DNA from: Girardia tigrina | Lineage: Eukaryota | Direction of reading: 5' to 3' | DNA length: 52,544 nt | Assembly (NCBI GenBank): GCA_001938485.1 | Contig: MQRK01234177.1 | Span: 12,923 to 65,466, forward strand | Shown here: piece by piece, positions 4,982 through 52,544 of the stretch | Numbering within the stretch: the stretch's first letter is position 1 | How the letters are laid out: each line of letters starts with the position of its first letter | Notes under the pieces: generated by a model | Databases searched by the model: none | The model's input: only the letters and a program-made list of their open reading frames with translations | What the model was told of the DNA's origin: nothing | Made by a program: the position numbers and the translations under genes

Positions 4982-7900
4982 GTAAATTTTTATGTCTGTT
5001 TTCAGCTAATAGAAAAAAAATAGGTGGTTTATTTTACGGCTTTATTTCCGTACGTTGTCATAATCATTATGGTCGTCAATGGTTGTTTGCTAAAAGGTTC
5101 CAGAAAAGGAATAGAATATTATATAATTCCAAAATGGGATTCACTTTTAAAAATTCAGGTATTAAATGCATTTAATTATTTGAGTTCGAAAAATAAAAGA
5201 ATGATTTTAACACATGATTTCTAAATTTTTCTTTCATACTTTGTCAAAATAACTTTTTTCATTCAGTGTTGTTTCTCGTTAGCTCTTTAAATTCTTTATT
5301 TTATTAAATTTTTTAAAATAGTTTTAAAAATAAGTCATCCTAGACAAAAATAAATACATATACTATGTAATTATTAAAGTTTTGTAACTCCATCATAAAT
5401 GTTTATCATCTTTCTTGGGAGAAGATATTTAGAAAATTATTTATTACAACTAAAAAAGATAATTTTTATCTTCAACGAATTTACAATGAAATCAATTGCA
5501 TTCTCGATGGAGACATAGTTTACCTCAGAACATAGTCTAATTATGTAGCCAAATTCATATTTGGAAAGTTTGTGCTGAAGATGATCCACATATTGGACGG
5601 CCTTCATATGAAGAAGATGAGAAGATACAAGTTGTTCTTAACGAAGACCCATGGGCTTTAAGAAGAAAAAATTCTGAGAGCATTTTTAATAATAAGACGA
5701 TTATGAGATGACGATTGATTTAAATGGGAAATAGCCAAGATTTCTATATGCAGATCTCATATGCGCTAACCGATGCAACAAGAACGAAAAGAGTTACCAT
5801 GTGTGAAATTTAACAGTAGTACAGCAAATATTTCCTTCTCGCCTAATTACCACTGATGAAAGCTGGACAAATTGACAGAACAGTGGACAACAACGGTACA
5901 AATCTTGGCTAGGTGCTTGAGATCAACAAGTGACAAAAACAAAAATATGCTTACCCTCAAGAAATATCTTGAACTTGAAATGCACTATTCTTATGAATGT
6001 TCTGTTATTTCATAAGACTGTTGTTGCAAATTAATACCGTAACCTATTTCGAAAACTAATTACGGAAGAACTTGAATAATAATTATGTAATAATTGAATA
6101 ATAGCACAAATTTGTAATGACTATCTTTATCCATAGCACGACAACGACATGTCCCATATAACTATCATTATGCGAAACAAGATTACACAGTTTTGTTTGA
6201 AAATTTTCGAACATTCATCGTACTTAAAAGTCTTGCTTATCTCAGATTTTAACCTTTCTTAATCCAAAAATTTTTTTATTACCTCAAACAACGGGCAAAA
6301 TTTAAGTAGACGCAATTCTTCAGGCATAGCATCAACAAGCTACCATGAAGGGAGCAAACAATCTATAAATCTCAATGGTAACTATTTTAAACATTGGTAA
6401 GACGATGATGATTAGATAAATTGTTGCTTTTCACTTTTAATTGACATTTCAGCAGAAATGTTTGAGTCAAACTTGTAAAATATATTTAAGCGGATTTTTC
6501 AATAACAATTAATCTGTCTTAAATAGATTTAAATGATGACTTTATACTCAACTTTAATAAATTGAAAGAGAGACTTGTTGGGATAATAATACATGGATTA
6601 AATGATTTTCTAAGTAATGTCGCACAAGAAACTCACTCGCAATATATTTTAGATTGATCTGATCTACAAACCTTATTCACGTGTCCAGTCAATATTGCAA
6701 CCATTACTCAATCGTCAATGTTATAGAATTTGTTTAAAATAGTATACAATAATTTTTATTATCATAAATAATAATATCATTGAAAAAACTAAATTTTATT
6801 CTTGCAATATATTTCGGTGAATTTTCCACCACCATCAGGTTTAATTAACTACAATTAAATATTAAAATGATTATAAAATCAAGTGATGCAATAGCCAATA
6901 AAATAATCTTAACAAAGTGGAAGAGTGACATGCATGATATCATGCTAATCAAAAATTCTCAATAAGCTGGTTGAGACTGCCGATTGAACATTGATTTTAG
7001 GCCAACGTGACGTAATTAAAAACGCTCCTTAGAATTTAGGTCACGTTGCATTAAAATTAATGTTCATTTGGCAGTCTCAACCAACTTATTGAGAATTTTT
7101 GATTAGCGTTATTTCAAGCAATCGATTACACAATCTTTTTTCTTTTATATACAGGTGAATTAATTATTAATGAGTGACTTGAAGATGTAGGTTGATACGT
7201 TGAAATATATTGTCAATAAATATATTTTTTAATGGATGAGTTTTGGTTTTCATAGAAAATTATCATCCGGATTTTATTTTATCAATAATCATTTTTAAAA
7301 TTATACCATATAGTTACTATATTTTTATACAGAATCTTCAAAACACTGACAAATTAAACTTGTGTGAATCTAGTGGTGTTCTACAATGTGATAAGCATCT
7401 ATTTTCATTTTTAATAATAAAAATATTACTAAATGGAATACTTTATATTTTGACAAATGAAATGTGATTTGAACGTTTTTTTAGGCATGGTCAGATGCAG
7501 CTACTCAGATCTTTTATTCACTCGGAGTAGCATTCGGAGGACTTTTGACAATGTCTAGTTATAATAAATTTCACAACAATTGTTACCGGTATTTCTTAAT
7601 GCTGAAATATATAAATTAATTTGTTTTCAAAATTATTAATTAATTAAAAAATCATATATATATATATATAATGCAAACAAAGGCCATTTTTGATTTTGAA
7701 ATTTATTGACAAGTCATAAAGTGATTAATTACTATTTATATAGTTGAAAACTATTATATCATACGTCACAAAAACATGCTTTTTTCATTAAAAATAGTAT
7801 TTCTTTTAATTTTTTTTCAATGATATTTAAAAAACTTTAATATGATTAGATGAATCACATTGCACGTTTAAGCATGGTTTATGATGCTTTATTAACAATG

Positions 7901-10900
7901 CTTCGGTAATAATCCTTTCATAATTTGTGTCAAAATTATTTAAAATTACTTAAAAATCTTCATTATGATCCATAGATTACCTTTACATTTTTTAATATGG
8001 CTCAATATCAAATTATTTCTATTCGATTGAGTATGTTCAGCAATTCTAGTACGGAGAAGACGATTTGTCTCTCCAATGTACAAGGCTTCGCACTTGTGAC
8101 ATTTGAATTGATAAACTAGATATGCCTTAATACACAAAGGAGTTTTTGATTTGTTTGAAAAATAGTTCCGGCATTTATTAGTTTTACAAAAATTACTCTC
8201 AATTTTAAGCCAACAGGTGTTCCATGTTCTAAAAATCGTTTGAACTCTTTTTCTCTCTCTGAGTACGGTAATTTTAGATTGATAGTCATTTGATTATCAA
8301 TGTCATTTTCCGAAGTTATATTTGATGTATTATTTGATTTTAAGTAAATGGATTCAAATCAAATTTTATGATTTTATTTAAATACTTTTTATTAAATCCA
8401 TTTTTAGAAAGCCTATTATGAAGTTCATCAACTTCATTATCAAAAATCTCAAAGGTTAATGTTAAACCCCAAACTCTATGTACCAAACCTTTAATCATGT
8501 TACTATTGTATTTTGGGTCAGAAAAACTGTTTGGACAACTGTAAAAACCGGTAACAGTTGGTTTTCGATATATTCGAGTCTGATATTTATATTTAATTCT
8601 TACAATTAATACGTCCAAAAATGATAGTTTACTAGTATTTTCCATTTCAAAGGTAAATTTGATATTAGGGTGAAGACCATTTACAAACTCTATGTAACAC
8701 GCGAAAAGTTTATTTTCAAAACACTGTTTCATTAATAATATTCAAACAAAATATTTATCAAAAAATCATATATTAAATATTTTAAATATTTAAATATCCA
8801 ACACTTTCACCAGATTCGTCCATAGATGAATCTGAATTCACAATGTAATCATTTAGATAAGACGGTCTTCGTCTTTCTCTACTAGACCTACTGTTCAATG
8901 ATTGTTCCTCTTATGTTTGATTGTCTAGTGGTGATGCAGTTTCCTCTATATTCATATAGTGTCAGGCTGTCTAGGTCAAATGTCTGCAATATGTCTTGGA
9001 CCGCAAAATCCGTTAAAATTAACTAGATATTTCCATTGATCTATTCTTTTCACGACGACACCCTTGGCCCATTGATGTGTACATAGTGTACTGTTTTCCG
9101 GTTTTACCCACACTAACTGATTCTCAATATAATCTGAGTTTCCACAAAACGGTTCCTTTTCGCTTCTTCCAATTATATATAGTAGGCAAATAGCTATACA
9201 GCGCCGAGCTTGGTGTTTCTTTTCCTTCAGATGGCGTGTTATTATACCACCATAAGGCTTCCAATATGTTGATATTTTATCTGGACGTAATTATTTTGAT
9301 TGTCCTGTGATTCTTTTCTATTATTCCGTTGCAGTTAGGTCGATTGATGGCATGATACATGACTCAAACGTTCCACTTTTCCATTAGCTTGTTGAATTCT
9401 ACTGAATGCAATGTGGTATAATTATCGATAATTAGTTCTTCGGGAGACCCGCGTGCACAAAACAAACTTGAGAATTCTAAGACAATTGACTTGACGTCTT
9501 CAGCCTTAATTAATTTCCATATCGCAAAGCGTGAAGGACCACAATCGATTACACTTAAAAATTTTTGTTGATTGTACTTTGTAACATCTGCAGCAAGTCT
9601 TGTCCAGTTTTCGTTGACGCTCAGCCTACCGGTTTTCCATTTTACGGGTGCCGGATCGATGGATTGACATTTTGGACATCTTGAAATCAGATCCTTGATA
9701 TCCGCGTTAGATACACCTATTCCTTGCTTCGCACATAGATATCGCATTCTGTTTGCGCCCAAATGACTCTTATCATGAAGTTGCTGCAGCTTGAGTAGAT
9801 CGTCCTTAACCGATAAAAACAATTGCTTCTTTTTAATTGTTTTGGGATTCTTGTCAACTCGTCCGCCTTGTTATCTTCTCTACTAACAAACTCGATCTTC
9901 AACTCAATCTCATACTCCTGACACAGCTCCTTGATCATCGACAGTTTTCGTTTTATTAAAAGCTCAGATGAAGTCTTGGTATTTAATTTTTCGCGATTTG
10001 AGATTGTTGAGGTTATCCACAAAACTACTGACTTATTATCCAATTTTACAATCACGCTCCTTAAACCCCATTTCAAACATTAAGTTTAAACCCTTTACAA
10101 CAGCTTCTAGTTCTGCTACATTAATATGTCTAGAATCATCAGTTTTTCTCAACCATGATGCATCCTCGATTATATTCCCTTTGACTTATAAGGCCGCACC
10201 AATGGTTATTGAACTTGCGTTGAACCATATAATACCTTCCCTGCAGTTATCAATGACCCATTAGTTGTAAACTAATAGAAGACCCCACTTAGTTGTCGCC
10301 TTGTCCTCCGAAAGTCGGCCCGTCTTCCCGATCGTACCCAGATAAAGGGGGCACGCCGGTCTACTCATCGTTTATTTCCATTTCATTTATTTCCAGGAGG
10401 AATAACAAACATCTTTGTTTATAACATTTATTATTATTTTAAAATTTACACATTTTTTATAACACTTTTGGATGTGTTTAAACAAGCGTCTTTATGTTTT
10501 TAGTTTTTTCTTTTTCAATTATTGGAGTAACACAATGAATTCTACCAAATAAATAAAGTAAAAATTGCAGCATAAAATGGCAATGAAGTTTATCCTGATG
10601 ATATAAATGTACATAAAGTACAACGATGGTTTGAAAATTTTGAAAATGTAATCTTTAAACACATTTTTTTCTTTGTCGGATCGAGTACTTGTTCGAGGCA
10701 CTATTCACATTTTGTTAAAAATTTACTATTGCTTTTTAATTTCGTAATCAGTATATTTATTTATAATTTAGAGATGCTCTTACGGTATCAATAATCAATT
10801 GTGCAACAAGTTTTACTGCTGGATTCGGAATATTCTCTGTCATTGGATATATGTCGGTAGAAACTGGTAGATCAATAGAGGATACGACGACCAGTGGTAC

Positions 10901-13900
10901 AGGGTTAGCTTTTGTCGCTTATGCGCAAAGCTTATCTACCATGAAAGTGGCACCATTGTGGTCTATTTTATTTTTTGGAATGTTAATAACTTTGGGAATC
11001 GATTCTCAATTCGGAGGAATGGAAGCTATATTTACCGGTCTTCAAGACGAATTTCCTATTTTAAAGAAAACACATTTCATTGACATTTCTTTCAAACTGG
11101 TAGTTCAAATTTTACTCTTTTTTCTCGGGATTCCATGTATATCAAAAGTAAAATATAAAAATTGTTAAAAACAATTTTATAAAATATTAGGGAGGAATAT
11201 ATATTTTCACAGTAATGGATACATATTGCGGTAGTTTTTCGTTGTTGATCATTGGACTAATGGAATTAATTGCCGTTGTTTACTTTTACGGTGAGATTTT
11301 TTAATTTTTTCTAAATTATCTTTAAATCAATTAATGGGATAAGAATAATAGGATCAAAGACACTATATCTAATTGATGTAAAGTGTCCATATGATACGAA
11401 AAAGAACATGGCCAACAACAACACCAGGAATCTGGACCATTTCCAGAACTTGGCGGAAATTTGCCGTCGGGCCATGCCGGAAACCATGTTGTCGGTGCAC
11501 ACTCTTCAGGTGGGTGCATTAGGAACTTGGCCGAAGAGGAACACTGATATATTGACAACCCTAAAGATCCCACCAAAGGTGATACGACGAATTGTAATAG
11601 GCTGCTCTGTATCCAATCTTAGATACTCGACAGCTTTATGGATGTATCACCGGGACGGTGTGATCCTTACTGGGACTCAAAAATTAAAAAATAGTGATAG
11701 AGGACATTAAAAGAACCTCATGAATTGATGCTCATGATGGAGGAAAAGAATTATAAGCATTCAGAGCCTAAGGATACTGAGATATTTTGATATAGCCGCC
11801 CTGGATGCACTCCTACAGTCATACAACTTTAGGATTCGAGTGCAACAGGGGAAAAAAGATCAAGTACAGGATAACGATGACGAAACACAAGTATCCCTCC
11901 AATATAGGAGGAGGGTTGGAGACTCGTCTGAGGATGAAAACAACCCATCATTGGAGGAAAAATTATCCTCCGATGATGAGTTGATAATGTGTGAGTAGAA
12001 ATGTCGGACTTGGCGGAAACGATCACCCAATTGAAGGATGCGGGGGGAGGCCGCGAGTAAAGAACCCCGTGAAAATCAGGGCACATGATGAAGATGGCTT
12101 CGGCCCGAAACATGGTGCGAATGAATTCATGTTACAACCGGGCACTTTTGTTCATAAAAAATTAACTTTTAATTTCTCAAAATTTTATTAGATAAAAATG
12201 CTTTAACTAATTTTTAAAATAAACATTAGTTTTCAAAATATATGAAATTCAATAAGTTAAATAGTTTACTAATATTATTAATATTATAATAAATATTATT
12301 AAAATTTATAATTATAAAACTTTAATTAATTAGTATTCAAACATTAATCGCATTAAATTAATTTCATTAGATTTAAATAAATAATCAGTAACATATAAAT
12401 CCCATCTGAGTAGGAGAGTCACCAATCTAAACACCATACAAACTTCCGAATTATGATGAGGAATATTTCAAATTCACTATGTTGAGATTGGTATGTTGAA
12501 TTTGTATTTTGGGCTTGAATGTTAGCATCCGTTATGTTTGATCGTGTTTTGTGTTTAGTCAATTTTATTTTCACACGATTAGCAGGTGTAAGTTGAATCA
12601 AAAACGCTCAAAACTTTTTATGCAAGATTTCTCAAATTCGAAAATTTCTCTTTTGTGAAATAAGTATTATATAAGTCTACTTTTGATTCTGATGTTTCAA
12701 AAATGTGTTTCAATTTGAGATTACATTATAAGTCAACCATTTATTATGTAAGAAATATATTTTGTAATAAATTTTATAATATATTTTGTAAATACTTAGG
12801 CTGTCCCAAAAGTCCTCAGGTGACCTTTACAAACGCACTAATATTTTACCAAATTTAACCAAATTTGGACAGAATATTATTCAGACTGTCAAAAATACTG
12901 TGTTAAAATTTCAAAGCATAAAATTTAAATAACGTAAAATTTTGTTTTATTAAAGGATTGAAATTTTAAAAGTGCAGCGAATTCAAATCAAGCGGTTTTT
13001 AACAATGGAACCAAATAAATGTTGCCAACGTTTTTTTGTTCTAACTCAAAGTAAAAGAGGATTCTCTGCTTCAGAAATTCTTCAGCAACTTCAGCAGGCA
13101 TGGGAAGACGCAAATCACCCAGCACTGAAAACTATTCAACAATGGTTGACTGATTTTAAAAACAGAAAAGCGGACATCCTTCGACTTTTCATCAAGAAGT
13201 GGCAGGCCGTCATTAATAGACAATGAAAAGATTAAAGCAGTCAAAGAAGTGATTGATGAAGCTCCAAATGCGTCTTTGCGTTATATTGAAAATGAACTTT
13301 CTTTAGTCAAAAATACAGTCCACAAAATTTTGCGTGAAAAACTTCATTACAAAAAAAGTTTGCTCTGTTTTGGTCCCTCACGAACTTTCTGCTGCTAATA
13401 AACAACAACGTATTAACACTGCAAAGCATATACGCCATGTAATTTCACAGATGGTTGATAGAGTATATTCCAACATAGCGATCGAGGATGAGACATGGGT
13501 CTTTTTCCAAGGTAGAGGAAAGAAAAAAGATCACAAAGTTTGGATTCCTTCTAATGCTGTTCCACCAAAAGTGATAAAGCCATCGCCAATGACTGATAAA
13601 AAATCTCGTTTTCGTAACCATTTACCTGCAACAAACGTTTTAATGTAAAAGCACTGCCATATGCTACCAAGATTGATTCCGAGGCGTATGTCAACTTTGT
13701 TCATGACACCGGTGAAAATGGCAGAAACTAAAATCTAACAACATCAAACTAAAGGAACTTAAGTGGTGGTATGATAATGCAAGACCTCATTCTAGCAAAG
13801 AAACAACTCTTTTTTTTGAAAGAAGAAAAGTTGAAAAAAATATCAATCGCCCTATAGTCCAGATTTTAATCTGTGTGACAGATTCTTGTTTTCAAAAATG

Positions 13901-14302
13901 AAGAAATGTTTTAAAAATCATGTTTTCAAATCACATGAAGAAATTGAAGAAGCTTGTAAATTCTTTTTTTAATTCTTTATCAACAGGAACATTAAAAAAT
14001 CAACTAGATAAACTTTTTTACTATTGTCAGTTGGCTATTGACAACAATGGTGAATATATTGTTGCTTAAGAAATTTTTAAAATATATTTTTAAATAAATT
14101 TTTCAATTCACTGCATCTATTTTTTTGTTGGTTAATAATATTATTTTTTGGTAAGTTTCAAATTTTATGCTTTGAAATTTTAACACAGTATTTATGACAG
14201 TCTGAATAATATTCAGTCCAAATTTGGTTAAATTTGGTAAAATATTAGTGTGTTTTTAAAGGCCACCTGAGGACTTTTGGGACAGCCTAAGTATATATAA
14301 TA

Positions 14303-14349
<47 letters not shown>

Positions 14350-17300
14350 ATTTGATTAAAGCTTTTTTATATAATTATTGGACATGTTTCGATGTTTACA
14401 TCATCATCAGTAATTTTCGGATGTTTAGTATATGAATATTGAATTGTTTGAATAATGCAATTTTTTTTACAATTTTAATAAATATAATTTACTTTAAAAG
14501 GTGACAAATAAATTATACAATAAGGTATACAAACAAGCAAATAGAACACAACATTAGGGTAACATTAGACAAATTATGTACAGATGCACGAGTTAAAAAA
14601 ACAATTAAAAGAAGAAAATACTGAAGAATACAAACAAATCATTNNNNNNNNNNNNNNNNNNNNNNNNNNNNNNNNNNNNNNNNNNNNNNNNNNNNNNNNN
14701 NNNNNNNNNNNNNNNNNNNNNNNNNNNNNNNNNNNNNNNNNNNNNNNNNNNNNNNNNNNNNNNNNNNNNNNNNNNNNNNNNNNNNNNNNNNNNNNNNNNN
14801 NNNNNNNNNNNNNNNNNNNNNNNNNNNNNNNNNNNNNNNNNNNNNNNNNNNNNNNNNNNNNNNNNNNNNNNNNNNNNNNNNNNNNNNNNNNNNNNNNNNN
14901 NNNNNNNNNNNNNNNNNNNNNNNNNNNNNNNNNNNNNNNNNNNNNNNNNNNNNNNNNNNNNNNNNNNNNNNNNNNNNNNNNNNNNNNNNNNNNNNNNNNN
15001 NNNNNNNNNNNNNNNNNNNNNNNNNNNNNNNNNNNNNNNACTTAAAATTTTTAATTAAAATATTTTTTGCCATTATTACCCAATAATATTTTCATAAATA
15101 ATAATGTTTAATTTATTTGTCACCTTTTAAAGTAAATTATATTTATTAAAATTGTAAACAAAAATTGTATTATTCAAACAATTCAATATTCATTTACTAA
15201 ACATCCAAAAATTGCTGATGATGATATATGTAAACATCGAAACATGTCCAATAATTATATAAAAAAGCTTTAATCAAATTATATTTTCGAAATACTAAAC
15301 TTGCGTTCACAAGACTCAATAATATATAATATAATATATTTTGTAAAAGTGTAATGAATCTCGCAAGCTGAAAAATTGTTTAAAGAGGGACACATGCAGC
15401 CAGCGGTTTGGTCACCCTAGATATGAACGAAAGTCTTTTTCTGAAGATTCTACAACTTTCATCAAAAAATCCTTTATCCTTTCGTCGTCTGGTTTGGTGA
15501 ATGAAATTATAATTAAAATGAAATAAGAATTGTTACATTAATAAATGTTACTACTTAATGGTTCTTTCTGCATCATAACTCAAAAAAAACATTGTTATAT
15601 TTTAAAAATCCATAACTATAAGGTTTTAAATTCATGACTATTGGAAATAAATTATTATTCTTTCACTAAACAGTGAAAAATATTCTTTTAAAGCCGAAAC
15701 GCAAATGGAATTATCTTTAAATTCATACATCTTTTTAAATTGAAAATTGAATACAAAATTTGTTAATATTTTTATGTTCTATCTTAAGATAATATGATTT
15801 TTTATTTTTAACGTAGTCAATATATTTTTGCTGTATGATTGTATTAATTTTAAAAATTTATTTAATTTATATTTAAAATATCTTTACTTATCGTTTATAT
15901 TTAAAAATTTAATGACAATTTATATTGGAATAACTTTTAATAACAATTTAATGTCGTACACTTAATAATACAATATTAAAAGAATTAAAAAATATAACTT
16001 TTTTTCTCATCTTGCTATTTTATCTTTTATTTTATTCATACATTATTGTTTATGGTATACAATAAATTTTTAATTCAAGGAATCAAAAACTTAATGAAAG
16101 ATATCAAAATGATGTTGGGATTTAAGCCAGGATACTTTTGGATTGCCTGTTGGACCGTAATAACTCCACTAATTATAACAGTAAGTTTTTATCTTTTAAT
16201 CGTTTTATAATTATTATAATTATTATAATTATTATTTATAATTAAAAATGAAAATTTATTTTGGTTATTCAGACAATGACACAAATAATAAATCAAATTC
16301 ATTTTAATCCAATAATTTATTGGTTAGATGTTATTTAATATTAGTATATTTCCGTATAGATTGCTAGTTTAGTGCATGTTGTGATCTGATGATGTGATTA
16401 TTATCTCTAAACTTATTTTTTACCCATTTTATATATTCTTTAAAAGTTATTACTAATTAATAAGTTATCAGCTTTTATTTACATCTTAAAAAGTATAAAT
16501 ACTTAAGTATTACACTAATAAAAAATTCTTTTAAGACCACCAAACAATTATCAATAAGAATTAAAATTTGCCAAATTTTAATGAAATTCAAAACTTGAAA
16601 GCCAATTGAAAACGTTTATTAATTTCGACGGTTTAACCTTCATCGTCAAAACAAATGATTTTTCAAACGAAATTTACCTATATAGTGCAGTTAATGATTA
16701 TGCAATCAATACGTCGTAATCAGTACATCATTTAAAAACTCTCAGCAAAGTTGTAGAAAGTGCAGTTTGAACGTTAATTTTAGGATCCAAAGATCTAATA
16801 TATAACGCTTCACATGTCACTCTCTCACAATAATTTTTAAATTGACTTAAAAAAAGTGCACTTAAAGTGCACTCAATTTAAAAATGACTTAAAAAAATGC
16901 ACTTAAAGTGCACTCAATTTAAAAATTATTGTGAGAGAGTGACATGTGAAGCGTTATATATTAGATCTTTGGATCCTAAAATTAACGTTCAAACTGCACT
17001 CTCTACAACTTTGTTGAGAGTTTTTAAATGAGGTACTGATTACGTATTGATTACATAATCATTAACTGCACTATATAAGTAAATTTCGTTTGAGAAATCA
17101 TTTGTTCTGACGATGACGGTTAAACCGTCGAAATTAATAAACGTTTTCAATTGGCTTTCAAGTTTTGATTTTAATAACTTGCCAATTTTATTTCAATTTA
17201 TTTTAATTAAATTATTGAATAATTACTTTTTTAAAAAAATGTCTGTTTGATAGTCCCAAAACCTAATTTTTATTCCCTTATGTGATGCGGTCAATAAGTA

Positions 17301-21435: not shown

Positions 21436-23348
21436 TATTTTTTGGATAAAATATGATAATTATTTCCAAATGTTTTTGTAAAAAATATTTAATAAAATGA
21501 TCTTTATGTTGACTTTCTTAAATGTTACATAAATTCATAAAAATACAAAAAAAATATTTTTTAAGTAGATAAATATTTTATATTAAAGACAAAATAATAT
21601 CGTTTCGAATATTTTAAAGTGATAATATATTCTTACTTTCAACTATCATTGTCATTTATTAAAAAGTCAAAATAAATACAAAGAGAGGATTATATAAACG
21701 ATTATACGAAATTATTTTTATCAAAAACAATTTGATAAGCTAGTTGAGACTGTCGATTAAACATTGATTTTAGAGCAACACGACCTAATTAACAATGCTT
21801 CATAAAACCTATCTTCAATGACTATCAAAATGCTCACAGACAATCTTTAATAATCAATTTACACATTTGTGTGCGTTCAGCACTAGTTTTTCTTGACATT
21901 TATATTCATAAACAATATATGAACCAATTGATTGAATATTCGAACATAATTAAAATAATAATTTGATAAGTTTAAATTTTCAAAATTAAGTTTAATATTT
22001 TTTAAAAAAAGAAAAAACATTTAATTAGATATAAATAAAACTAATAAAATTTTAATTAAATTCATTTTTAACAATTTGAAAATATTTTTATTATTTTCAG
22101 TTTTTATAAAGAAATTGTTAAAATTATTATTTTTAATTAATATTTCTAGAAATGAAATATTTTTAAAAGACTTAGAAAAATTGTTCTAATAATCATGATT
22201 AAAAATAGAAAAAAATCAATTAAAGAGATGTCTAACGGAGAACGATCTTTCGAGAGTTGGAATGACTCTAAATGTGATAATAATAAAAATTTAAATGAAA
22301 ATTGTGTCATTGTTCTTAACACCTTTATTAGCGACACGAAAGGCCTAAGTAAATGTTAAATATTGAAACTAAGACTACGATATGTTCAAAAACGTTGAAA
22401 GAAAACACGTCCCAGCAAAAACTATGTCAAAAAAACGAATCAGCGAAATTTTTAATACTTAATTAATTATGATAACATTTTTTTATTAAATACATTTCGT
22501 CGTAGAAATTATGCTACAGTGAATTGTAATCCAAAAACAAATTGTTCGTGTAAAACATGGCACCTGTCCTTTAATGAACTTATCAGTACATCTCATCTAA
22601 TAATATGGTCATTTTGGGTTCAATAAAAAACAAATGGACTTTTAGTGAAGAAGTAATTGAACAGATTATAATTGGTTATCAACTTCTACCAAAGAAGCGA
22701 AAATATCACGACTGTGCAAATTTATCATTTTAAAAACATTTTTCAATAACTTTGTAACATGCTAAACAATTTTATTTGCATATTTATAATAATTTTTGCT
22801 GCTTATTTTAATTTTGACAAATATATAGATTGAGTACTGAAAATAATTTTATTCAAATTATATTGAAAACATTATTATTTTACTTTATTATATTATTTTA
22901 GATTTAAAATTTTAGTTTTTAATCATTTGAAAAACCAAAATGTGTAAATAATCTATGAAGCTTTCTAGGTATTTTTAATTATTACAGAAGATTCATAAAA
23001 TTATACGCAACAAAAGCTAAGACGTTGGAATAACTATGTGGATTGAACAAACACGAACTGTTATGGACGATGTCGTGGGATTTAGCGTTTTCATCAATGA
23101 AGAAAGCTTTAACAATTTTAAAAGTTCCAAGATTCTGACAAAGATTCCAAGGAATGACATAAATCCACATGAAAGTTTTAGGATTTGTTAAAAAAATCAA
23201 ATACAATTGTTAGATTTTACTCATTCAACACAAACGTCATCCTTAACAAACTGAGTTAATATCTCAGAATTATCTCCTGAAACAGCACATAAAATAATAA
23301 GAATAATATTGTAATAGGTAACAGTACATAAAAATTAACTTTTACAAC

Positions 23349-23860: not shown

Positions 23861-24474
23861 GTAATTTATTTTATAAAAATAAAAGGTAAATGTTTAAGGA
23901 AATTTTTCTCTTGATTTTTTAAATTATTCCGATTTAGAGGAACTCTTTTGGACAACCTTCATTACGAGGTTAATTTGAAGTAACAATTTTTGTAAAAGAA
24001 ACACGTCTTTTCAATCATTAAATATTTTATTATAATATGATAAATATTTTTTAATAAAAAAGATGTTACTTTCAAACTTCTTCTTTCAATCAATTGCAAT
24101 TTTATGAGAACTCTTTTTATTAAAATTAGTTTTTCATTATTTTTTTAATATCAGATTTAATTTAATCTTTTGAAAAACTAATTGAGTAACTTGTAAATAT
24201 TTTGTTTTACTGATTAGAATTTGATTCGGCAGATAAAATCATTTATTATTTTCGTTCATTTGTGAGATTTTTCAATATTTTTTATCGAAATGTGACAGAA
24301 AATGATGAAACTACATTTCTGTTAAACAATATATGTTTAAATTAATTTAAAATTATTAAATGAATAAATCAAATTAATATTTTTGAAATTAATAATTTTG
24401 AAAATAAATTCCTCTTAAATATTACAAATGAATATTTAAGTGTTGAATTTGATTAATGTCATTTTTAAAGCTTT

Positions 24475-25654
24475 ACTTTGCACATTTTGAATGTTTATTA
24501 ATTGGTTTTAGTTTCTTATTTATAATGATTCACAAAAGAGCAACTCATAGTCGTAATCAAAGCCCTTCTGTAAAACAGAAAGCTCATCCTTTGAAACGAA
24601 AGATTCTATTTTTACTATGTAACCAATGATTGACTTACTCGATCGACTCAATTCTGAATGCTCACTAATCCCGGGTTTAAGATGACGATTTGTCTCTCAA
24701 ATGTACAAATTTTTACACCTATGACAATGAAATTTATAAATCACATTAGCTTGCAATCCACCCATCGTTTTCGAGAGGAAGCTTTGAACTTTGGGTGTGA
24801 TTGAAATCAATTCGACACTACTTATATTCTTGCAAGTATTTGTAGTGTCCTCATTTGTTTTAGTAATCATCATCATTATCTTTTAACATTCTATATACTC
24901 TTATACTACATCCTATAATGTTTTCCTTTCTTCTTACAAGTAAAAATTGTCTTTCAAATAGTCATAAACCTTTCTGGCTTCTGTATGAAATAACAAAAGA
25001 TAAAAATAAGTTGACGGAATTCGATTTAGAAAACCAATCACCAAGTCAAAGCACACCATTTTTTAAACTAACACAGAATAAATTTGCCAATATTTATAAA
25101 GGTTAAAATGAATTAAATTTCTGAAAACTTAATTAAAAATACACTAAAAGAGATCAATTTCATTCTAGTAAACAAACCATGGGCAGTTATCGATTGCCGT
25201 TTGAGAAAACGATATAATTACTCGATCATCCCAAACTTTAAAGGTAATGGTAACTGTATAAGTATAGATAGTAAACTTAATTAGTATAAAGGAAATAGAT
25301 ATATTTTAATCACTTTTCTATACTGTACTATAATATAGTATTCTAGAATGAATAAGAAATTAAGTACGATATACCTTTAATAATTAAAAAATTTATTAAT
25401 TACGTTTTGGAGAACTTATAATTCAACATTAAATAGACAACAAAAAAACAAAAACTTCCTTTTAGAATTCTGCGAAACATAGAATGATAAAATGAAAAAT
25501 TGTCAAAATAAGTGACTTTGCACATTTTGAATGTTTATTAATTGGTTTTAGTTTATTATTTATAATGATTCACAAAAGGGCAACTCATAGTGGTAATCAA
25601 AGCCCTTCTGTAAAACAAAAAGCGCATCCTTTGAAACGAAAGTTTCTATTTTTA
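24475..25654 (-). mobile_element. Penelope-like remnant: GIY-YIG fragment between 140 bp direct repeats
   Basis: Direct repeats 24475-24614 and 25515-25654. Minus strand ANVIYKFHCHRCKNLYI*ETNRHL...ISEH at ~24660-24750. Confidence 0.75.
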
Positions 25655-26603: not shown

Positions 26604-27014
26604 GATTTCAATCCAAAATGAATCATTGTCTTTACAAATACGGTTTGAAAGGCGTTTCTTATGAGATCTTTAAGCAATTATCATGCCAACAATGTCTTCA
26701 TTATTTGGGCTTCGCTCGACAACAGAAATCCAAAAACGAAAGCAAATTCCTGATTGACTCGGATGATGTTAATAATGTCGACAATTTCCAAGAAAGATGT
26801 AATAAGTGGTACAGTTCAGACGATTGTTCCAGACTGTGGAAGTGTTGTTCTGATGCTGATGTTTGTTGCAAAAAACAAATAAATTGGCATAACAACTTTA
26901 CTGGAAATATTTCCATTTGTCCTATGGTATGGGACGGGTTTTCCTGTTGGAATCAAGGATCATTGGGAGAGATCGCCAAACAGAAATGCCCAGACTTTAT
27001 TCTTTTTAAATCGA
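26604..27014 (+). CDS. GPCR exon: Cys-rich extension plus first half of the hormone-receptor domain
   Basis: LWKCCSDADVCC...CPMVWDGFSCW...CPDF. The start is either the acceptor at 26603 or the ATG at 26618. Confidence 0.88.
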
Positions 27015-30000
27015 GTAAATCTTTCACTATTTTAAAGTATTTTTAAATTGAAATTAGTCATTATTGTTAGATGTTAAATTTCATTTTTTATTATTTTCTT
27101 CTGTATACAAAATATTTTTTTCAAAACGATTAATGACAATTATTTTATATTTTTTTAATGTAGAATAATTTTTGCATTCTCTTTATATTTTTTATTTTTT
27201 TCTTAAAAAAAGGAAGAAAATATAAAAAATATTCTATTCATGTTTCATTATTTCTTCATATCCACTTTATTATGAAAAAAATATATTTTTAAAATTATTT
27301 TTATTATTATTATTATTAGCAAATAAAAATTGAATTGACTAAAAATGAAACTAAAATTAATAATAATATTAGTAATTTATAAAAAAGAACAAAGTAATGA
27401 AAATTGCTGTGTAATTAAAATTTTTAATTGATGATACAGTTTGACTGATAAATTCACTTGAATTTGATCAATTAATGAAGAATGTTATGCTTCAAAAGTT
27501 GGATATTATTTTATGTTATTTCAATAATTCGAAGAATATCTTGGGAAATAATTGTGAGGAATATTTTTGAATGGTGTTTATTATATGTTGTGTTTTCTAT
27601 GTTGTTTTTAGGATTGTGTTTCTCCTACACAGATGGAAGATTGATTTTTTAATAATTTGAACCATCGAATTATGCGGAAAAATTTAAAATATAAATAACA
27701 ACTTTTAATTAAAAAAAATGAATTTTAATTAATAAATATATAATAAAACTTTAACCAAAATATTTTAAATCTTTTGGAAAGTTGTGAGGGAAACTTATGA
27801 ATGTTGTGAGTTTGTTGTTTGTATGGTGTTTAGATTGGTGACTCTCCTACTCAGATGGGATTGATATGTTATTGATTGATTACTTGAATCTAATGAGATT
27901 AATTTTAAGTACTAATTAATTAAAAGTTTGATAATTATAAATTTTAATAAAATTTTAGTAAGACAATTTTAATTTATTGAATTTAATATAATTTTAAAAC
28001 TAAAGTTTATTTTAAAATTTACATAGTACATTTTTATCCAATAAAATTTTGAGAAATTAAAAGTTAATATTTTTTATCTCAATAATTATATCAAATATTT
28101 GAATATAGACACAAAAAACATATTAATCAAGAACGATGCTTCCCGCTGATTGTGCTACTGATAATGATTCTGTTTGTGTTGTAAATAAATGTTTTCACGT
28201 AAATTATGATGTTGATAATAAAAGTGATATAAAATATTTTAATAATGGATTGAAACGTAAAAAATTATTTAATCATAAATAATATATTTTAAATTAATTA
28301 AAATATTTTTCAAAATAATTTTAAATTATTTTAGTAAGGAATTGTAATTTAAATTTGTTTGAATAATTAGAGATTTAAATTTATCAATCAAGAACGATGT
28401 CTAACTACGAAAGTTTTGTGGAAAATTGTTCTAGGGGAAATCCGAGTTGTGATGTCAAAAATGTATTGGAAATCATTTTAGTGTTCTTAATAATAATCAT
28501 AAAAAAAGATACTTCTAGAATCCGTAGGTTTAACTATTAAAATAATTCGATTAATGGAATAATAAAATAAAATAAAATAATTCGATTGGAATAATTTTCT
28601 CCAAAAGATCTCTATTTAAATCATTGTAAGTTTCATCCAACACCGACATTCGCTGATCATACAGAAACACTGTACCGTTTATTTGATTATTTCTATTTAA
28701 ATTTTGATCTAAAATCGATTTGAGTTTGATAATATCGACGAGAAGAATTATTTGGATATTTTTTTCGCGAGGAAGGAAACATTAAAGTCATATTATTTTC
28801 CTTCACAACACATTAATCTTTTGCTCTTTCATTCATTATTATTTTTTATTTTTAAAATAAAGGCTTTAAAATTGACATTAAATTCCGTACAACGTGGTTT
28901 TGAACCAGGAAAATTAGTAAACAAATGTCATACTTTTGACTTTGTTTAGCATACGTTATTGCCACAGGAATAATTATTACAAATAGAAAAATTATAAAAA
29001 TACGTATTACAACATAAATAAATAATATTAAATAAATATTCATCATTTTATGTCTTTAAAGAATATTAAAGAGATCCCTAAATAATAATCGTTAAAATAT
29101 TCAGATAAATTTGCCCAAAAGGCTTGCTTACCAAACGGTACATGGCAGACTTCCCTTAATGGAATCGGATGGACGGACTATTCCCAATGCACAGATATTC
29201 AGGTTAATTTTATTTTTTATCTGTTTTCTGAAAAATTCAAAAAATTATGTGTATATTAACCAATTTTAATTTAATTAACATATAATAAAATATTCATGAA
29301 TAATATGCCTAATTACAGATGAAAAATAAAATAAATTCACCAACCCTCGATGTTCTTATCACAATTTTAAGCATACTTTTATTTTTAAATTCAATAAGTT
29401 CTGTTTATTGCCTATAAAAAAAATATTTTAGAAGTTATCGTAAAATTTTATCTTTTTATATTATGTTTTTTATATTGTGCTTATTTAACCTTTTTACTAT
29501 AGAGATAATTTTGAAAAATGTAATGTGTACACATAAAAACATGTAAAACTTATAAATACAGATGCATGATTAACACCGAACTGTTAAAAACTTCGGGTAA
29601 ACGTCGGACAAGGGTCATTTTTACCCTTTTTATTTTTTTCATTTTGTATGAAGATGAGAATCGTATGATCTTCAATAAGTTTATGCTGTAAACAGACAAT
29701 TCAAATCGTTTGTCAACTAAAAAAAATCCAAAATTCAATATTTGAAAATTTTAAATCTGTAAAATTGATACAATATTTACAAATAGTTGTTACAAGTAAA
29801 GTTTTTTTTTGTTTTATGGAACATTTGCCATCGACGAATCTCATGTATTTATTGAAGACATTTTCTATCTTGTTTAAACATCCAAGAATAAACCAGTATC
29901 ATCTTCTTACATCTCAAGAATCTATTGAAGTAGAGATATAATCATTGTTGATAGCCAAAGGTTTCTCTGCTTTTGTTGATAATGGGTTAGTTAATTCCTC

Positions 30001-33549: not shown

Positions 33550-34436
33550 TTGAGTCCTGATCAAGACAACGGTCCCTATAAAGATATTAGAATGGAAAGA
33601 ACAAAGAAATCGATACTGAAAGACAAAATTGTGACAAAAATAGATAACAAATATTGGATTCCGAGAACCATAAGGACAGAATTCGTGGAAGACGCTCACA
33701 AGATGCTGTGCCATACTGGTAGTAAAAAGGTTTATAACTATTTGAAAGATGATTTTGATATGGTTAATATGAGAGAGATAGTTAAGGAAATTGTAAAATG
33801 TTGCATAAACTGTCAAAAGAGAAAGACTTTAACCACAAAAACGAAAGAAAGTTTTATGAAACAATTCGCTGATGAACCATTTCAAAAGCTGTATATGGAT
33901 TTTTGCGGACAATCTAAAAGGACTTTAAATGGATATCAATATATATTAGCTATAATCGATCAATTTAGAAGGTATATAAGTCTGAATTCTGTAATTCATC
34001 AAGATGAGAAAACTGCACGGAAGGTACTGCTGGACAGATGGATTTGGAAATTCGGACCACCAAAAGAAATCCATGTTGATAGATGTTTAAATGTAAAGCA
34101 TTCGAATCGAGACTCTTCAAAGACACACTGAAGAGATTTAAAGCAGAAATAATTTACTCCAGTCCTTATCATCACAATACCAGTGGCATCATTGAAAGAC
34201 AATTTAGAACTATTAGAGATACTATGAACATAAGGATAAAAGATCAAGCCCACAAAGATTGGACGGAAATTTTGCCAGAAGTAGAATTTATGATGAACAG
34301 CACAATTCAAGTTACCACAGATATCTCACCAGCAGAAATGATATTTGGTAGGAAGCTAAGACATCGGTGGAAAGATACTAAGAAACAGAGTTGTAATAAG
34401 AAAGAAAAGAGCGAAAATACGATAGAGCCACAGTAA
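33550..34436 (+). mobile_element. Ty3/Gypsy integrase fragment (frameshifted)
   Basis: HKMLCH..CINCQ zinc motif; LYMDF, IIDQF, IHVDR, SSPYHHNTSGIIERQFRTI, SPAEMIFGR. Confidence 0.92.
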
Positions 34437-46432: not shown

Positions 46433-47518
46433 ATGTACTCAAACGATACTTTCGAGTCGGAACTCGTATCTCTACTGAAAGATTATATCGTTCACTATAT
46501 ACATATAAAACCGGAAAATATTTTGTTATTTTCTTTTGAATATTTCAACAGTCTCTATAAAAAATATTGCATGGATGAATCGCTGAATTATTTTGGACGG
46601 AAATCGCATACCGATTCCGCCATGTCAACTTCAAGAATCACAGTCACCAGCAGTTATAGTCGCAAACGAGTGGTATCATCAGAAAAATTACCCATAGAAC
46701 ATCCCGTGTCTCCAAATAATTTCGTTCCGGAATTCGATAAAACTCCTGAAACCATTGAAAAAATTAGGGAAGCCATTAAAGCGGTCTTTTTATTCAAAGC
46801 GTTAAATGATGACGATTTGAATCTCGTTGTAAGTAACATGTTTGAAAGAAAAACCAATCCTGGTGAAATTATCATTCAAATAGGCGAAGAAGGAGACTAT
46901 TTTTACGTTGTCGGGCAGGGAATTTTCGAAGTTTATATTATGAGCGATAAAGAACCGATTTGTGTGAAAAGTTTACATGGTGAAGGATATTTTGGAGAAG
47001 TTTCAATAATGTATGATTGTTTGAGAACAGCAACTGTAATTTCAAGAACTAATGGAATTGTGTATGGTTTAGGCAAAAAAACGTTCAAAGAAGTCATTTG
47101 TATTAAAGCGTTTGAAAAACGACGGAAATGTTACGAAATACTTCGAACGATTGACATTTTTACGAGCCTTGGAGAATATGAAATAAATCACATGGCAGAC
47201 TCATTGATTCGCAGACTGTATCGCTCTCATGAAAATATTATGGTTCAAGATGAGACAGCTGAAGAAATGTATATTATTGAATCAGGAGAAGTTTTGATTA
47301 CAAGACGCGATGAAGACGTGGAAAGAAATTTGTTTTATCTGCATCCGGGTGACTATTTCGGGGAATTATCTTTTGTGAATAATCAGACTCGCCATGTGTC
47401 AGCTCATGCAGTTACTGATGTAGAAGTCATGGTAATCACCAAAGAAGGATTCGAAAGATTACTTGGTCCTTGTATGAATATTTTACGAAAAAATATTGAT
47501 AGAAATAAATATATGTAA
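46433..47518 (+). CDS. PRKAR2: cAMP-dependent protein kinase regulatory subunit, type II-like, divergent and intronless (361 aa)
   Basis: Dimerisation/docking domain (LLKDYIV...P..L.F..EYF..L); two cyclic-nucleotide-binding domains (GDYFYVV..G..FGEVSIMYDCLRTAT; FGELSF....R); C-terminal FERLLGPCM; AATAAA at ~47550. Confidence 0.93.
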   Translation: MYSNDTFESELVSLLKDYIVHYIHIKPENILLFSFEYFNSLYKKYCMDESLNYFGRKSHTDSAMSTSRITVTSSYSRKRVVSSEKLPIEHPVSPNNFVPEFDKTPETIEKIREAIKAVFLFKALNDDDLNLVVSNMFERKTNPGEIIIQIGEEGDYFYVVGQGIFEVYIMSDKEPICVKSLHGEGYFGEVSIMYDCLRTATVISRTNGIVYGLGKKTFKEVICIKAFEKRRKCYEILRTIDIFTSLGEYEINHMADSLIRRLYRSHENIMVQDETAEEMYIIESGEVLITRRDEDVERNLFYLHPGDYFGELSFVNNQTRHVSAHAVTDVEVMVITKEGFERLLGPCMNILRKNIDRNKYM

Positions 47519-50500
47519 AATAAGTAATACTATATTTAATATATTTGAAAATAAAAGTATTCATATTTTTGATATCGTTTTATTATTTGTTTACTATGGT
47601 TTATATGTTTTGTAAATAAAGTGAGGGTTAAAAGACCCTTCCACAAAATCTAAATATTTTATAATGAATACAAATAAATACAATATAAATAAAAACAAAA
47701 GAATTTCTAAATATAATTTTTCTTCTGTTTTCTATTATTTTGCTTCACTATTTTTTTTAGTAAAAAATGTCGAATATGTATAACAAACGCGCTTCAATGA
47801 TTTCTAACCTTAGTCATTTAGAAGGAACCTTTCTAATTAATTTGACACTTAGCTTTCGCAAGGAAGGCGTTCAAAGATGTCTTCTAGAAAACTTATCCCT
47901 TAATAGGAGTTGTAAAGGATACTGATGATTTAGTGATTTATTTATTACGATTTGACTATTCGTATGCATCTTTTACTATTTTTATAAAATTGTTAAATAA
48001 TAATAGAAATACAAAAAAATAAAACACGTAAATATATGATCATAGGACATGTTTCGATGTTTTCTTGAGTCAAAAATTTAAATATCTACAATACTTTTCA
48101 AAATCTAATGATACAAGATACAAAACAGTCAAGTTTCCATGAGTATAGAAATTTTCAATCAAATATCTCCATTACACAAAAGATCATTGAAGGTCCTTTA
48201 CATTATTTATAATTTTGGAGAGATAGATCGTAATGACGAATATTTCACATTAAATACAGGAATATGATTTATTAAAATTAATTTTCGTAGATAACGGTCG
48301 TTAAGATATCACAATATTTACTTCAGATTGTAAAATGTCAAAACATAAATTGCTGTTAAGTCCAAGAAGTTCATATTTTACATTTATTCCTCAAAGATGT
48401 CTTCCTAGATCTGTCGATCTAAAGTATGACTGAAATTTTAAGATTGTAAAATCAAAGGAAACATAGAATTCGTCATGTTATTTCAGAATTTTACGATTGC
48501 TCATCGAAATCCTTATGATTTCAACTGACCATATGCTGCAATATGATTAAGGAAAGAGTTTACTTTGATTGAAATGTTGTGTAAATATCAGAAAGATATA
48601 CACAATAGAATTTTAAAACAAAAATAATACTTAAACGTAGAAGAATATTTATGGTGTAATTACACGATGATTCTGAATGGATGAGTGGAAAAGACGTATT
48701 ACTTAATGTAGAGAAGACGATAATGGATGTAGAAACCTCTAGATCAACCGATAATCTAGTGCTGATAGCGTAATGTTTTTTCAGTCATCATTTATAGCCC
48801 TAACGATGGAATTTCTCGTTCTCTCGTAAGAGAATTTTGATAAATGTTAGAAAAATAAACCGAATTATAATTGTCTCTTATTGTTTTTGACCAATCATGA
48901 CTTTCCTGATTTGACCAATCAGAGTGAACCATTTCATTCACTAGCCACTTGACAAATAATAATCAACACATACACTGGCATCGATTACAGTTAATTGACT
49001 CCATGAGTCATCGATTATAGGAACTATTGCTCCTTTTTAGAACTTGTTTGATTAATTAAAAACTGATAATTTCAAACAGTGTTTTAAATAAGTATTCATA
49101 AAATTTCATTTCATGATTTTAATTATAATTATAACTATTTCTAATTATTAAAAAAGTTATATTAACTCATCATTTCATGATTTTTTATTAGGTGGCAGAC
49201 AAATGAACTAAACTAGTTCGTACTGTATGCAGTTTTAACACAACAAAATGTTAAAATTAATTTTATAAATTTTTTATGAATATTTGAACAAGTTTTTCCG
49301 TGTGTGGTTTATAAATTACAACATGAAACGAGGGGTTAATTCGGTTCTTTTAAATTTCTACTATTTGATTTTAACTCTCGAAAGCTGAATTTTATTTTTG
49401 ATATATGACTCTGAAATTGTGAATTTCGACTAATTATTTATGAAATAAAGATTGTGTAATCGATTACATGAAGTAACGCTAATCTATAATTTTCAATTAA
49501 CTGATTGGAACTGTCGTAGGAACATTGATTTAGGGCAGCGTGACCTAATTAACAATGTCCTACATGACTCTCTACCATTAACTGTCAAAATACCTAAACA
49601 AATTCTTAAATTTATCAATAATATATTTAATTATCATACAGACATTTTTACCATAAAACCTTTTACGTGTTTGTTACGTTAAATAATTTTTAGATTACTT
49701 TCACGAAACTGTTGGGATATAAGGTGATTTTTAGATAAAATAGAAATTAAAACAAAGAAGATGTTTTTATAAAAATATTTATTTATTAAGTACAATTTTT
49801 ACAATTTCACAATTATTAAAAAGTAATTGAGAAAAACTTAACCTATTAAAGATTTTATATTTTAGATAAGAAGGGAGAAGAAAATTCTTCTGCCCTACTG
49901 ATTTTAGGAAAATATATAAAAAATATTTTAAATAAAATATATAATTATATTTAAATTTGCAGTTCGTACTTTTGTCTTTGTGGCAATTGATAGGTTTTTG
50001 CCTTTTAGTTTTATATTCCTTTTATCTCAAAAATACAGTTGATTTGTTTCTTAAGGAAATCAATTCGGCTTGATTTATTTTCATAATACGCTTTCATTGT
50101 CTCTCTTTACGGTTGAATCAAGTTTTCCTTCTTGTTGGATTAATTAAAATCTGTCTCTTTTGCTTCTTCAAAAATAACTCAAAACTATAATTTTCAAAAT
50201 ATAATTAATGGCGTCTTTCTTAAATTTTCGCTTCTTTTTATACTCCTTTTTTCCATCTTAATTTTCTTTATTTATACTTTAAATAATTTTAATTATCTTT
50301 TGTATAAAAATACTTTTTAACTTATTCCATATTATTTATTCTTTCTATCTATTTTTAATTTAATTATTTATATATATATATATATATAATTTATATTTAA
50401 TTTGATAAAAGATAAATAATTCTTATTTTATCTTGTTAATTAAAACAAACTTATTTTTGATATTTTTATTTAAAATTTATTTTTCCATATACCTAACAAA

Positions 50501-52544
50501 ACCATGTTAGAAAGTGCCACTTCTGTGAATAATTATAAAAAAAGAAAATATACATCAACAAGCAGGTTAAGTTAGTTAAATTATACTTATTCCTTTGCCA
50601 CGAGTATATTTGCTGCTTCAGTCAGCTAAACAGATACACCATTAACGGTGTTATTGTTTCAATTTTAAGAAGACAATTAATTAATTGGGCAAAAAGTAAA
50701 CAGGTTAAGATTTCGGCAAGTATGTTAAGGTTTCCTCAAAATTTTATGTTGTGTATATTAAGTAATTATTTACAGACATTTATTTTTATTATCAATATTA
50801 ATTTTTTCTGTTTTCAGAAACAGAAATGACATTATCTAAATAATTCATTTTAAACCGGTAAAATATTAATATTCATTAAAAATAAACCTGACAGCTGATT
50901 ATGTTAATTAATATAATAATATAAAACCAATGACATTTTATATATTGTGTTTTTGCATAAGTCTTTTATATTTTCATATATTTCATAAAGAACATTTTCA
51001 AATGGAGTTTATTGAATGTTATGTTTGGTATGTTGTTTTTAGGATTGTGTTTCTCCCACCCAGATGGAAGATCGATATTTTGAATGTTTTGAACCGTCGG
51101 ATTATTCGGACAATTTCAAAATATATATAGCAACTTTAAAATTAAATTACAGGGTTTTTCATTTTTATAAAACCTTAATTCCGTTTTTAGAAAACCTTAA
51201 TTCCGTTTTTAGAAAACATTAGTTATATTTATTTATTTTTGGGACTTAATCGAGATTTTTCATAAAATAAATATCATTTTCAGTTGTAAAATATCATGTA
51301 ACTTATATTGGTTTAATAAATCTTTATTGTTTTAAAAACAAACAGTAAAACATAAACAGAACAAGTTTTTCATTAAATAAAATCCTCGAGTCGTATTGCC
51401 ATATGAGACACATATGAGAATAATAACCCCTCATATCATACTCATCATTTGACAACAGATTAGTAACTAGATTAATAATACCCTCTTGATCTCGGGGAAT
51501 TTCCTTCTAACAATATCGATGTTTGAGCGTCGAAAAAAGCCCTCAAACTGATTCAGTTGAGGAGAATATGGTGGTAAGAACTTCACCACACACCCATTTT
51601 CATTTAAAGCTACTTTTAAATACTTTAAAAATACTTTTTTTTAAATACTTTTTTGTAGTGGCTACTTTGTATTTAATTTTTGTATTTTTCAAAGGAATTG
51701 TGAAAATATTTAAAAAATATGTATTTATAAATTAAAATTTCAAAAATTTTAGGGTTGAAAATATTTTAAATTAAAATCTAGTGATAATTTTATATTATTG
51801 AAACATTATAATAAAAAAAATGAAAATTTATTAAAATTAAATTTTATAATAACCAAAATGAAAAAGTTTGGTTAAGGATTTATTTAATGAAAATTTTATA
51901 ATAATAAATTGTAAACGTTTAGTAAAGATTTTTTTTGAAAATTATTAGGTTCGTAGTTTTGTTGCGATGAAATTTCCTAAAAAGACATTTTTGAAACTTT
52001 TATTTTATAACAATAAACATATTTAAAAACAAAAACACACCATTTGTTAAGTATACATTTATTTTTAAGACAATTATTTAAGTATTGAGAGAGGGTGGCC
52101 TGTGAAGTACTTTATATCAGACCTTTAGATCCTAAGATTAATGTGCAAACGGGTCTCTCGAAAACCTTATTGAGCGTGTTTAGATGACATAATAATCCAT
52201 TGATGACATAATCACTGCTTGCCTATATAAGCAGATTTAAAATTCATTTTTTCCTTGAGACCTGACTGTGAGGAATATTTAGTGTGTGGATGTTTTTGTG
52301 TAGTTTTTGTATGTTTAAATGTTGTATGTTGATTTGGGATTGTGCCTCTCCTAACCAGATGGATTGTCAATATTTAATTTTTATAATCTGAAACTAATTT
52401 ATTTAAAGTTAGATTTAATATTCATATTTTTAGTTTTTATTATTGTACTTTTTAAATAATTTTAATGATTTTATTTTTGTAAATTTTTAAATAATTAAAA
52501 TCAAATTAATGTTTAAAAATAACTATAAAAATATTTTATTTCAG

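Follow-up and report, generated by a model that had tools for sequence, protein, structure and literature searches.

A hammerhead-bearing palindrome of Girardia tigrina is very probably a short, dead, inverted insertion of a Penelope-like retrotransposon

A near-perfect palindrome lies on contig MQRK01234177.1 of the Girardia tigrina assembly GCA_001938485.1, within a stretch of 52,544 nucleotides (positions 12,923 to 65,466 of the contig) that is referred to here as the window, and each of its arms holds an outward-facing hammerhead ribozyme motif. The first-pass annotation took it for a non-coding, non-autonomous fold-back ribozyme element, transcribed from either strand into a long hairpin that cleaves itself, and the question is whether such an element or some other process has produced it. 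With a probability of roughly 0.93, a Penelope-like retrotransposon (PLE) has left a short, dead insertion here, in which the end of the element has been written twice, head to head; its source would be an endonuclease-bearing family of the Penelope/Poseidon type, and the product, heavily 5'-truncated and inverted, would stem from one retrotransposition event. The coordinates of its parts are collected in Table 1. The genome searched for related copies comprises 1.43 Gb of AT-rich sequence in a fragmented assembly of 255,254 contigs, in which N stretches were left as they are.

Table 1. Features of the palindrome and its borders (positions in the window)
Feature	Position	Strand	Remarks
TSD, left copy	16575..16588	+	AT-rich, 14 bp; 13/14 identical to 17200-17213
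Left arm	16588..16845	-	Inverted 5'-truncated PLE end without tail; stops at the tail-less site used by other copies
Left hammerhead	16614..16652	-	Probably inactive: C3U (16649), mismatch in stem II (16639)
Remnant of the GIY-YIG endonuclease C-terminus with stop, left arm	16728..16845	-	tblastn with family proteins; same peptide as right arm
Head-to-head junction	16846..16907	.	62 nt of filler; short hairpin on the self-complementary hexamer GTGCAC; 41-nt tandem duplication
Right arm	16908..17202	+	5'-truncated PLE end with tail; 98% identity to many genomic copies that extend upstream into the RT/EN ORF
GIY-YIG C-terminus, last 40 codons of the RT-EN ORF and stop	16909..17031	+	tblastn 95% identity, E 1.6e-18
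Conserved short palindrome	17047..17061	+	Contains A/G site 17053, which is hypervariable; sister families retain the motif
TATA-like box of pLTR, putative promoter	17071..17079	+	Inferred; upstream of the hammerhead, kept in sister families
Right hammerhead	17104..17142	+	Intact minimal type I; predicted cut 17139/17140
PLE ORF, first ~30 codons	17113..17202	+	ATG 17113 at the start of stem II, inside the ribozyme
PLE tail	17169..17202	+	~34 nt, right arm only
TSD, right copy	17200..17213	+	Begins with ATT, shared with the last bases of the tail

The two inverted arms (16588-16845, 258 nt, and 16914-17168, 255 nt) differ by 8 substitutions and one 3-nt indel, and their description as near-perfect copies is confirmed; the right arm is longer than had been claimed and continues through the tail to ~17202. 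A rare change (16932 G>T) is common to both arms, and each arm shows further private decay. Each arm reads from the last 38-40 codons of a GIY-YIG endonuclease and its stop codon into a 3' UTR/pLTR, which carries a minimal type I hammerhead, and then into the beginning of an ORF. Between the stop codon and the hammerhead lie a conserved short palindrome and then a TATA-like box, and a TATA box has been reported in the PLE pLTR (PMC3846280). The statement that the palindrome holds no coding remnant is therefore mistaken: both arms encode the GIY-YIG C-terminus, and an ORF opens with an ATG inside the ribozyme. The frame opened by this ATG runs into the N-terminus of the ORF in two longer copies (L020 and the sister copy L063).

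The parent family encodes a 540-amino-acid open frame, with one short N gap, that extends from the RT through to the arm peptide (L021/L033). Its Pfam matches are RVT_1 (E 6e-10) and a weak GIY-YIG domain (E 0.002, short of the curated cut-off). The DKG motif is found in the family, as is a CCHH motif, with both Cys located between GIY and YIG and the two His after them (translations of L021 and L027), and the pLTR carries a hammerhead that overlaps the start of the ORF, as in EN+ Penelope-like elements. The link to Penelope pLTR hammerheads made in the first-pass annotation is thus borne out, the arms belonging to an RT+EN PLE family. A CX2-5CxxC zinc finger in the RT-EN linker marks the Neptune, Nematis and Naiad clades (PMC8557442); because the linker of L027 is devoid of this extra zinc finger, its sequence points to the Penelope/Poseidon clade as the probable home of the family. 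The nearest named matches in the protein search are cnidarian RTs (36-42%), and no named reference PLE proteins are among the matches. No fetched copy, whether full-length or partial-tandem, is complete with the pLTR at its 5' end; L020 and L047 contain parts of the ORF N-terminus.

The borders of the insert are those of a PLE. It derives from the end of the element, lies between the two copies of a target-site duplication (TSD), bears a single tail and has a unique central junction. The 13/14 match between the TSD copies has a chance of 0.0004 in local flank DNA. Among the ten insertions of the family in which both ends are visible, nine have the tail at exactly one end, and duplications of 12-16 bp are found in seven other two-ended insertions.

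This architecture has already been published for PLEs (PMC4209133, PMC3846280, PMC8557442), and the object is known in kind. Penelope/Poseidon elements with inverted pLTRs (Arkhipova et al. 2013, PMC3846280; Craig et al. 2021, PMC8557442, Fig. 2) likewise combine 5' truncation, a head-to-head inverted copy and a TSD, have a one-sided tail of 30-40 bp and a palindrome where the inverted copies meet, and share a pLTR with a TATA box and the first ORF codons as well as a C-terminal GIY-YIG domain with CCHH. Unlike in those elements, truncation is extreme here, with almost nothing left beyond the two arms, and inversion looks dominant in the family. Pairs of minimal hammerheads that lie on opposite strands, at a distance of ~100-700 bp, have also been described (PMC4209133). 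A further parallel is Poseidon_Ac (PAc) of Anolis (Frangieh et al. 2024, PMC11167929), in which the ORF also starts where stem II begins, the cut follows ~26 nt later, the tail is bounded by two end points, and ATT is found at the target junction. RT initiation in PAc lies at 111-118, whereas the end points here, read from sequence alone, lie ~56 and ~90 nt after the ATG.

Several other PLE pieces are present in the window. A second head-to-head pair of arms at 14335-15294, interrupted midway by an N gap, belongs to a different and more distant family and is probably another inverted PLE stub; each of its arms has an outward-facing minimal hammerhead with a GUC cut site, a different palindromic stem III and the same architecture built from different stems, and no ORF match was found in these arms. 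The 190-bp palindrome at 6931-7120 belongs to a third PLE family and is made of the C-terminus of its endonuclease, with related pieces occurring singly at ~21706-21807 and 49444-49557, and decayed PLE RT/GIY-YIG fragments are found at 7830-8696 (-), 24466-24819 (-) and 52071-52184 (+). Elsewhere in the genome, arms of different PLE families adjoin at one locus (L048/L070 on G000:C221459, L024 and L045), which may reflect nested targeting of pLTRs. The remaining features of the window include 175-bp inverted repeats that flank a decayed ORF (12755-14331) and, by eye, look like a DNA transposon of the Tc1/mariner type; an intronless ORF of 361 amino acids with two cNMP-binding domains (46433-47518); an HRM (hormone-receptor) exon (26618-27046); two LTR-type integrase remnants (33550-34131 and 9364-9822); and a MULE transposase remnant (309-779).

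The right hammerhead agrees with the motif as it was first written out: it has a stem I of 3-4 bp, an extra U after A9, a stem II of 5-6 bp that starts with G-C, and a palindromic hexamer as stem III. Minimal hammerheads of metazoan PLEs (Cervera and de la Pena 2014, PMC4209133) have the extra base after A9, G10.1-C11.1, a short helix I and a palindromic helix III in common with it; by comparison, helix II here is 5-6 bp long and nearly invariant across four sister families, and helix I measures 3-4 bp. The left arm contains the mirror copy with two substitutions, as annotated. Both substitutions are private, being carried by 0 of 42 other arms, and C3U alters the catalytic core without a G8A partner. 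Only the core of the right arm is intact, so that the proposal of cleavage from either strand lacks support.

The checks proposed for these motifs gave divided results. A minimal-hammerhead descriptor, applied in a setting slightly looser than the right-arm motif requires, had no match in 40 composition-matched simulated windows, in favor of the annotated motif; the Rfam search (E up to 1) did not detect a hammerhead and returned just chance miRNA matches at the centre of the palindrome. Across four related families, 97.7% of cells are paired and stems I and III show 10 two-sided changes, as counted on a gap-free alignment; neither value is reached in any of 500 shuffles, a result that is not a probability since the sequences are related, and slid controls count far lower. 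Covariation among relatives is thus seen in stems I and III, and stem II, which barely varies across families, contributes little information. The single-strand fold of the monomer forms just stem II, with a z-score that is not significant, as expected for a minimal motif. When the palindrome is folded as a whole (predicted -405 kcal/mol), nearly all of the right ribozyme pairs with the left arm, which would support the suggested masking by the complementary arm.

The inserted copy would accordingly be inert, with a decayed left core and a right ribozyme paired in any read-through hairpin, and its hammerheads would be passengers of the pLTR. The hammerheads of the parent element would be under selection and probably act as dimers or with the help of protein. 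For minimal PLE hammerheads, monomers showed no cleavage and dimers cleaved weakly (PMC4209133); the ribozyme of PAc depended on protein, and insertion in vitro did not require the ribozyme (PMC11167929).

The arm search returned 3,234 candidate places; among the scored ones, identity to one arm is mostly 92-98%. At least 1,400 arms of the family are present in the genome. One 25-mer of the family occurs in at least 1,384 exact copies (586 with A and 798 with G at 17053), and the ribozyme core has 5,846 genome matches at up to two mismatches, sister families included. Exact ribozymes occur in outward-facing pairs 16 times at a spacing of 430-460 nt and 21 times at 250-280 nt, counts that refer to two 31-nt bins in which this family and one sister family are pooled; in the 430-460 nt bin there are no direct and no inward pairs. 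Inverted rather than direct pairing looks like the usual outcome in the family.

The central junction has a single match genome-wide, with up to 3 mismatches allowed, and the other inverted copies all differ in their breakpoints and spacings and are joined by overlaps of 2-16 nt or by short fillers. Palindromes of this kind therefore arise anew at insertion, time and again, and do not move as units. With a unique junction, there is no fixed palindromic unit in many copies of the kind that defines a MITE or fold-back element. Non-LTR retrozymes (bioRxiv 10.64898/2026.07.22.740005) have a type I hammerhead related to those of PLE pLTRs, but they are non-coding head-to-tail tandems, whereas a single inverted pair with coding remnants is present here, and no tandem retrozyme units were found. 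The first-pass reading of a MITE-like or retrozyme-like fold-back element, transposed in palindromic form and controlled through masking of its hammerheads, to which the long perfect hairpin that masks the ribozyme and the further short palindromic copies in the genome would lend themselves, is thus largely refuted by spacings and breakpoints that vary continuously around a junction found once, by arms that are RT+EN remnants with a mutated left core, and by ends that bear the ordinary PLE insertion signature of tail and TSD.

It is also very improbable that the palindrome is a chimera of two repeat copies created by assembly or amplification. The assembly is fragmented, and none of the listed contigs from independent runs spans the central junction, where the 41-nt duplication could be an assembly slip. 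Against a chimera, the TSD encloses the whole insert and the tail is confined to a single end; the arms share a rare variant and have each decayed privately; both outer junctions are crossed by contigs from independent runs (left, X2; right, X1); and the same structure is known in other animals.

A PLE insertion leaves the question of how its end came to be written twice. The GIY-YIG enzyme would have cut both strands of the AT-rich target ~14 bp apart, and each cut end would have primed reverse transcription from the end of the element, one cDNA starting at the outer site, with the tail, and the other at the inner site, without it. Both cDNAs would have stopped after 260-290 nt and would then have been joined head to head through the self-complementary hexamer and filler. 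PAc cleaves and extends both target strands, is predicted to act as a dimer and has two RT start sites that bound the tail (PMC11167929).

The strongest rival to this course of events is fold-back self-priming, in which one cDNA folds at the self-complementary hexamer and serves as its own template, the second arm then being copied as DNA from the first. This route has been proposed from palindromes at inverted junctions (PMC3846280) and is a fair possibility here, though less likely than not. The short hairpin at the central junction fits it too. It would also account for the rare G>T change found in both arms and for the lineage markers that arms share in general, those at 17142, 17143 and 17148 agreeing between arms in 10/11 pairs at each. 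Since lineage markers and rare variants are shared within an insertion, both arms come from one source element. Self-priming predicts, however, that arms are identical at insertion, yet they mismatch at site 17053 at the rate of independent draws, and the arms of one copy (L002) differ solely at this site over ~260 nt. Moreover, most other junctions are overlaps or fillers and not hairpins.

Site 17053 is unlinked to any lineage marker, although the flanking markers are mutually linked (r2 up to 0.86), and copies with A and with G have equal divergence (p 0.87). The arms differ at 17053 in 7/11 fetched pairs (one of them A/T), in 6/13 further pairs read by eye from the outward-pair matches and in 3/7 pairs among the 25-mer allele matches, with few pairs per sample, some of them selected for their resemblance to this copy; independent draws predict a mismatch of ~48%. 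The homologous site also differs between the arms of a sister copy (L062), and it stays A in a sister family that has G instead of T preceding it. On the element sense strand, 17053 and 17078 are two A/G sites unlinked to lineage markers, and single-base N calls occur there in L023 and L024. A literature search returned, as weak evidence, no report of a site of this kind.

Several sources of this variation were considered. The A/G allele does not track the presence of the tail (18/11 versus 6/4), and promiscuous ADAR editing was rejected on the basis of 65 singleton A>G against 56 T>C changes. A steady post-insertion hotspot is disfavoured by the equal divergence of A and G copies, and assembly mixing, as a cause of the missing linkage, by the occurrence of all four combinations of 17053 and 17078, 25 nt apart, among linked flanking markers. 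The pattern fits a change made per molecule at or before insertion, with arms that were templated separately. Tentatively, the arms may have been reverse-transcribed separately from two RNA copies of one source element, one per nicked strand, 17053 having been altered in each molecule so as to form a natural barcode. Taken jointly with separate templating, A-to-I RNA editing or cDNA deamination is a possible, if doubtful, form of the per-molecule change. RNA editing at 17053 is not established, as there is no general A>G excess and the surroundings of the site are not those of a classic ADAR target; cDNA deamination after fold-back, or a very fast DNA hotspot, may instead be the source of the variation.

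As a single stub, the palindrome matters little, being probably one among hundreds in the genome. The family is a source of data on the mechanism of head-to-head inverted insertion in PLEs (PMC3846280, PMC11167929), with many young two-armed insertions that combine a tail marker, TSDs, lineage markers and one independently varying site. Two-template priming and fold-back are thus computationally testable against each other on a long-read assembly. If the tentative reading of 17053 is true, separate templating would argue against fold-back self-priming, and the barcode would indicate a site-specific modification of PLE transposition intermediates.
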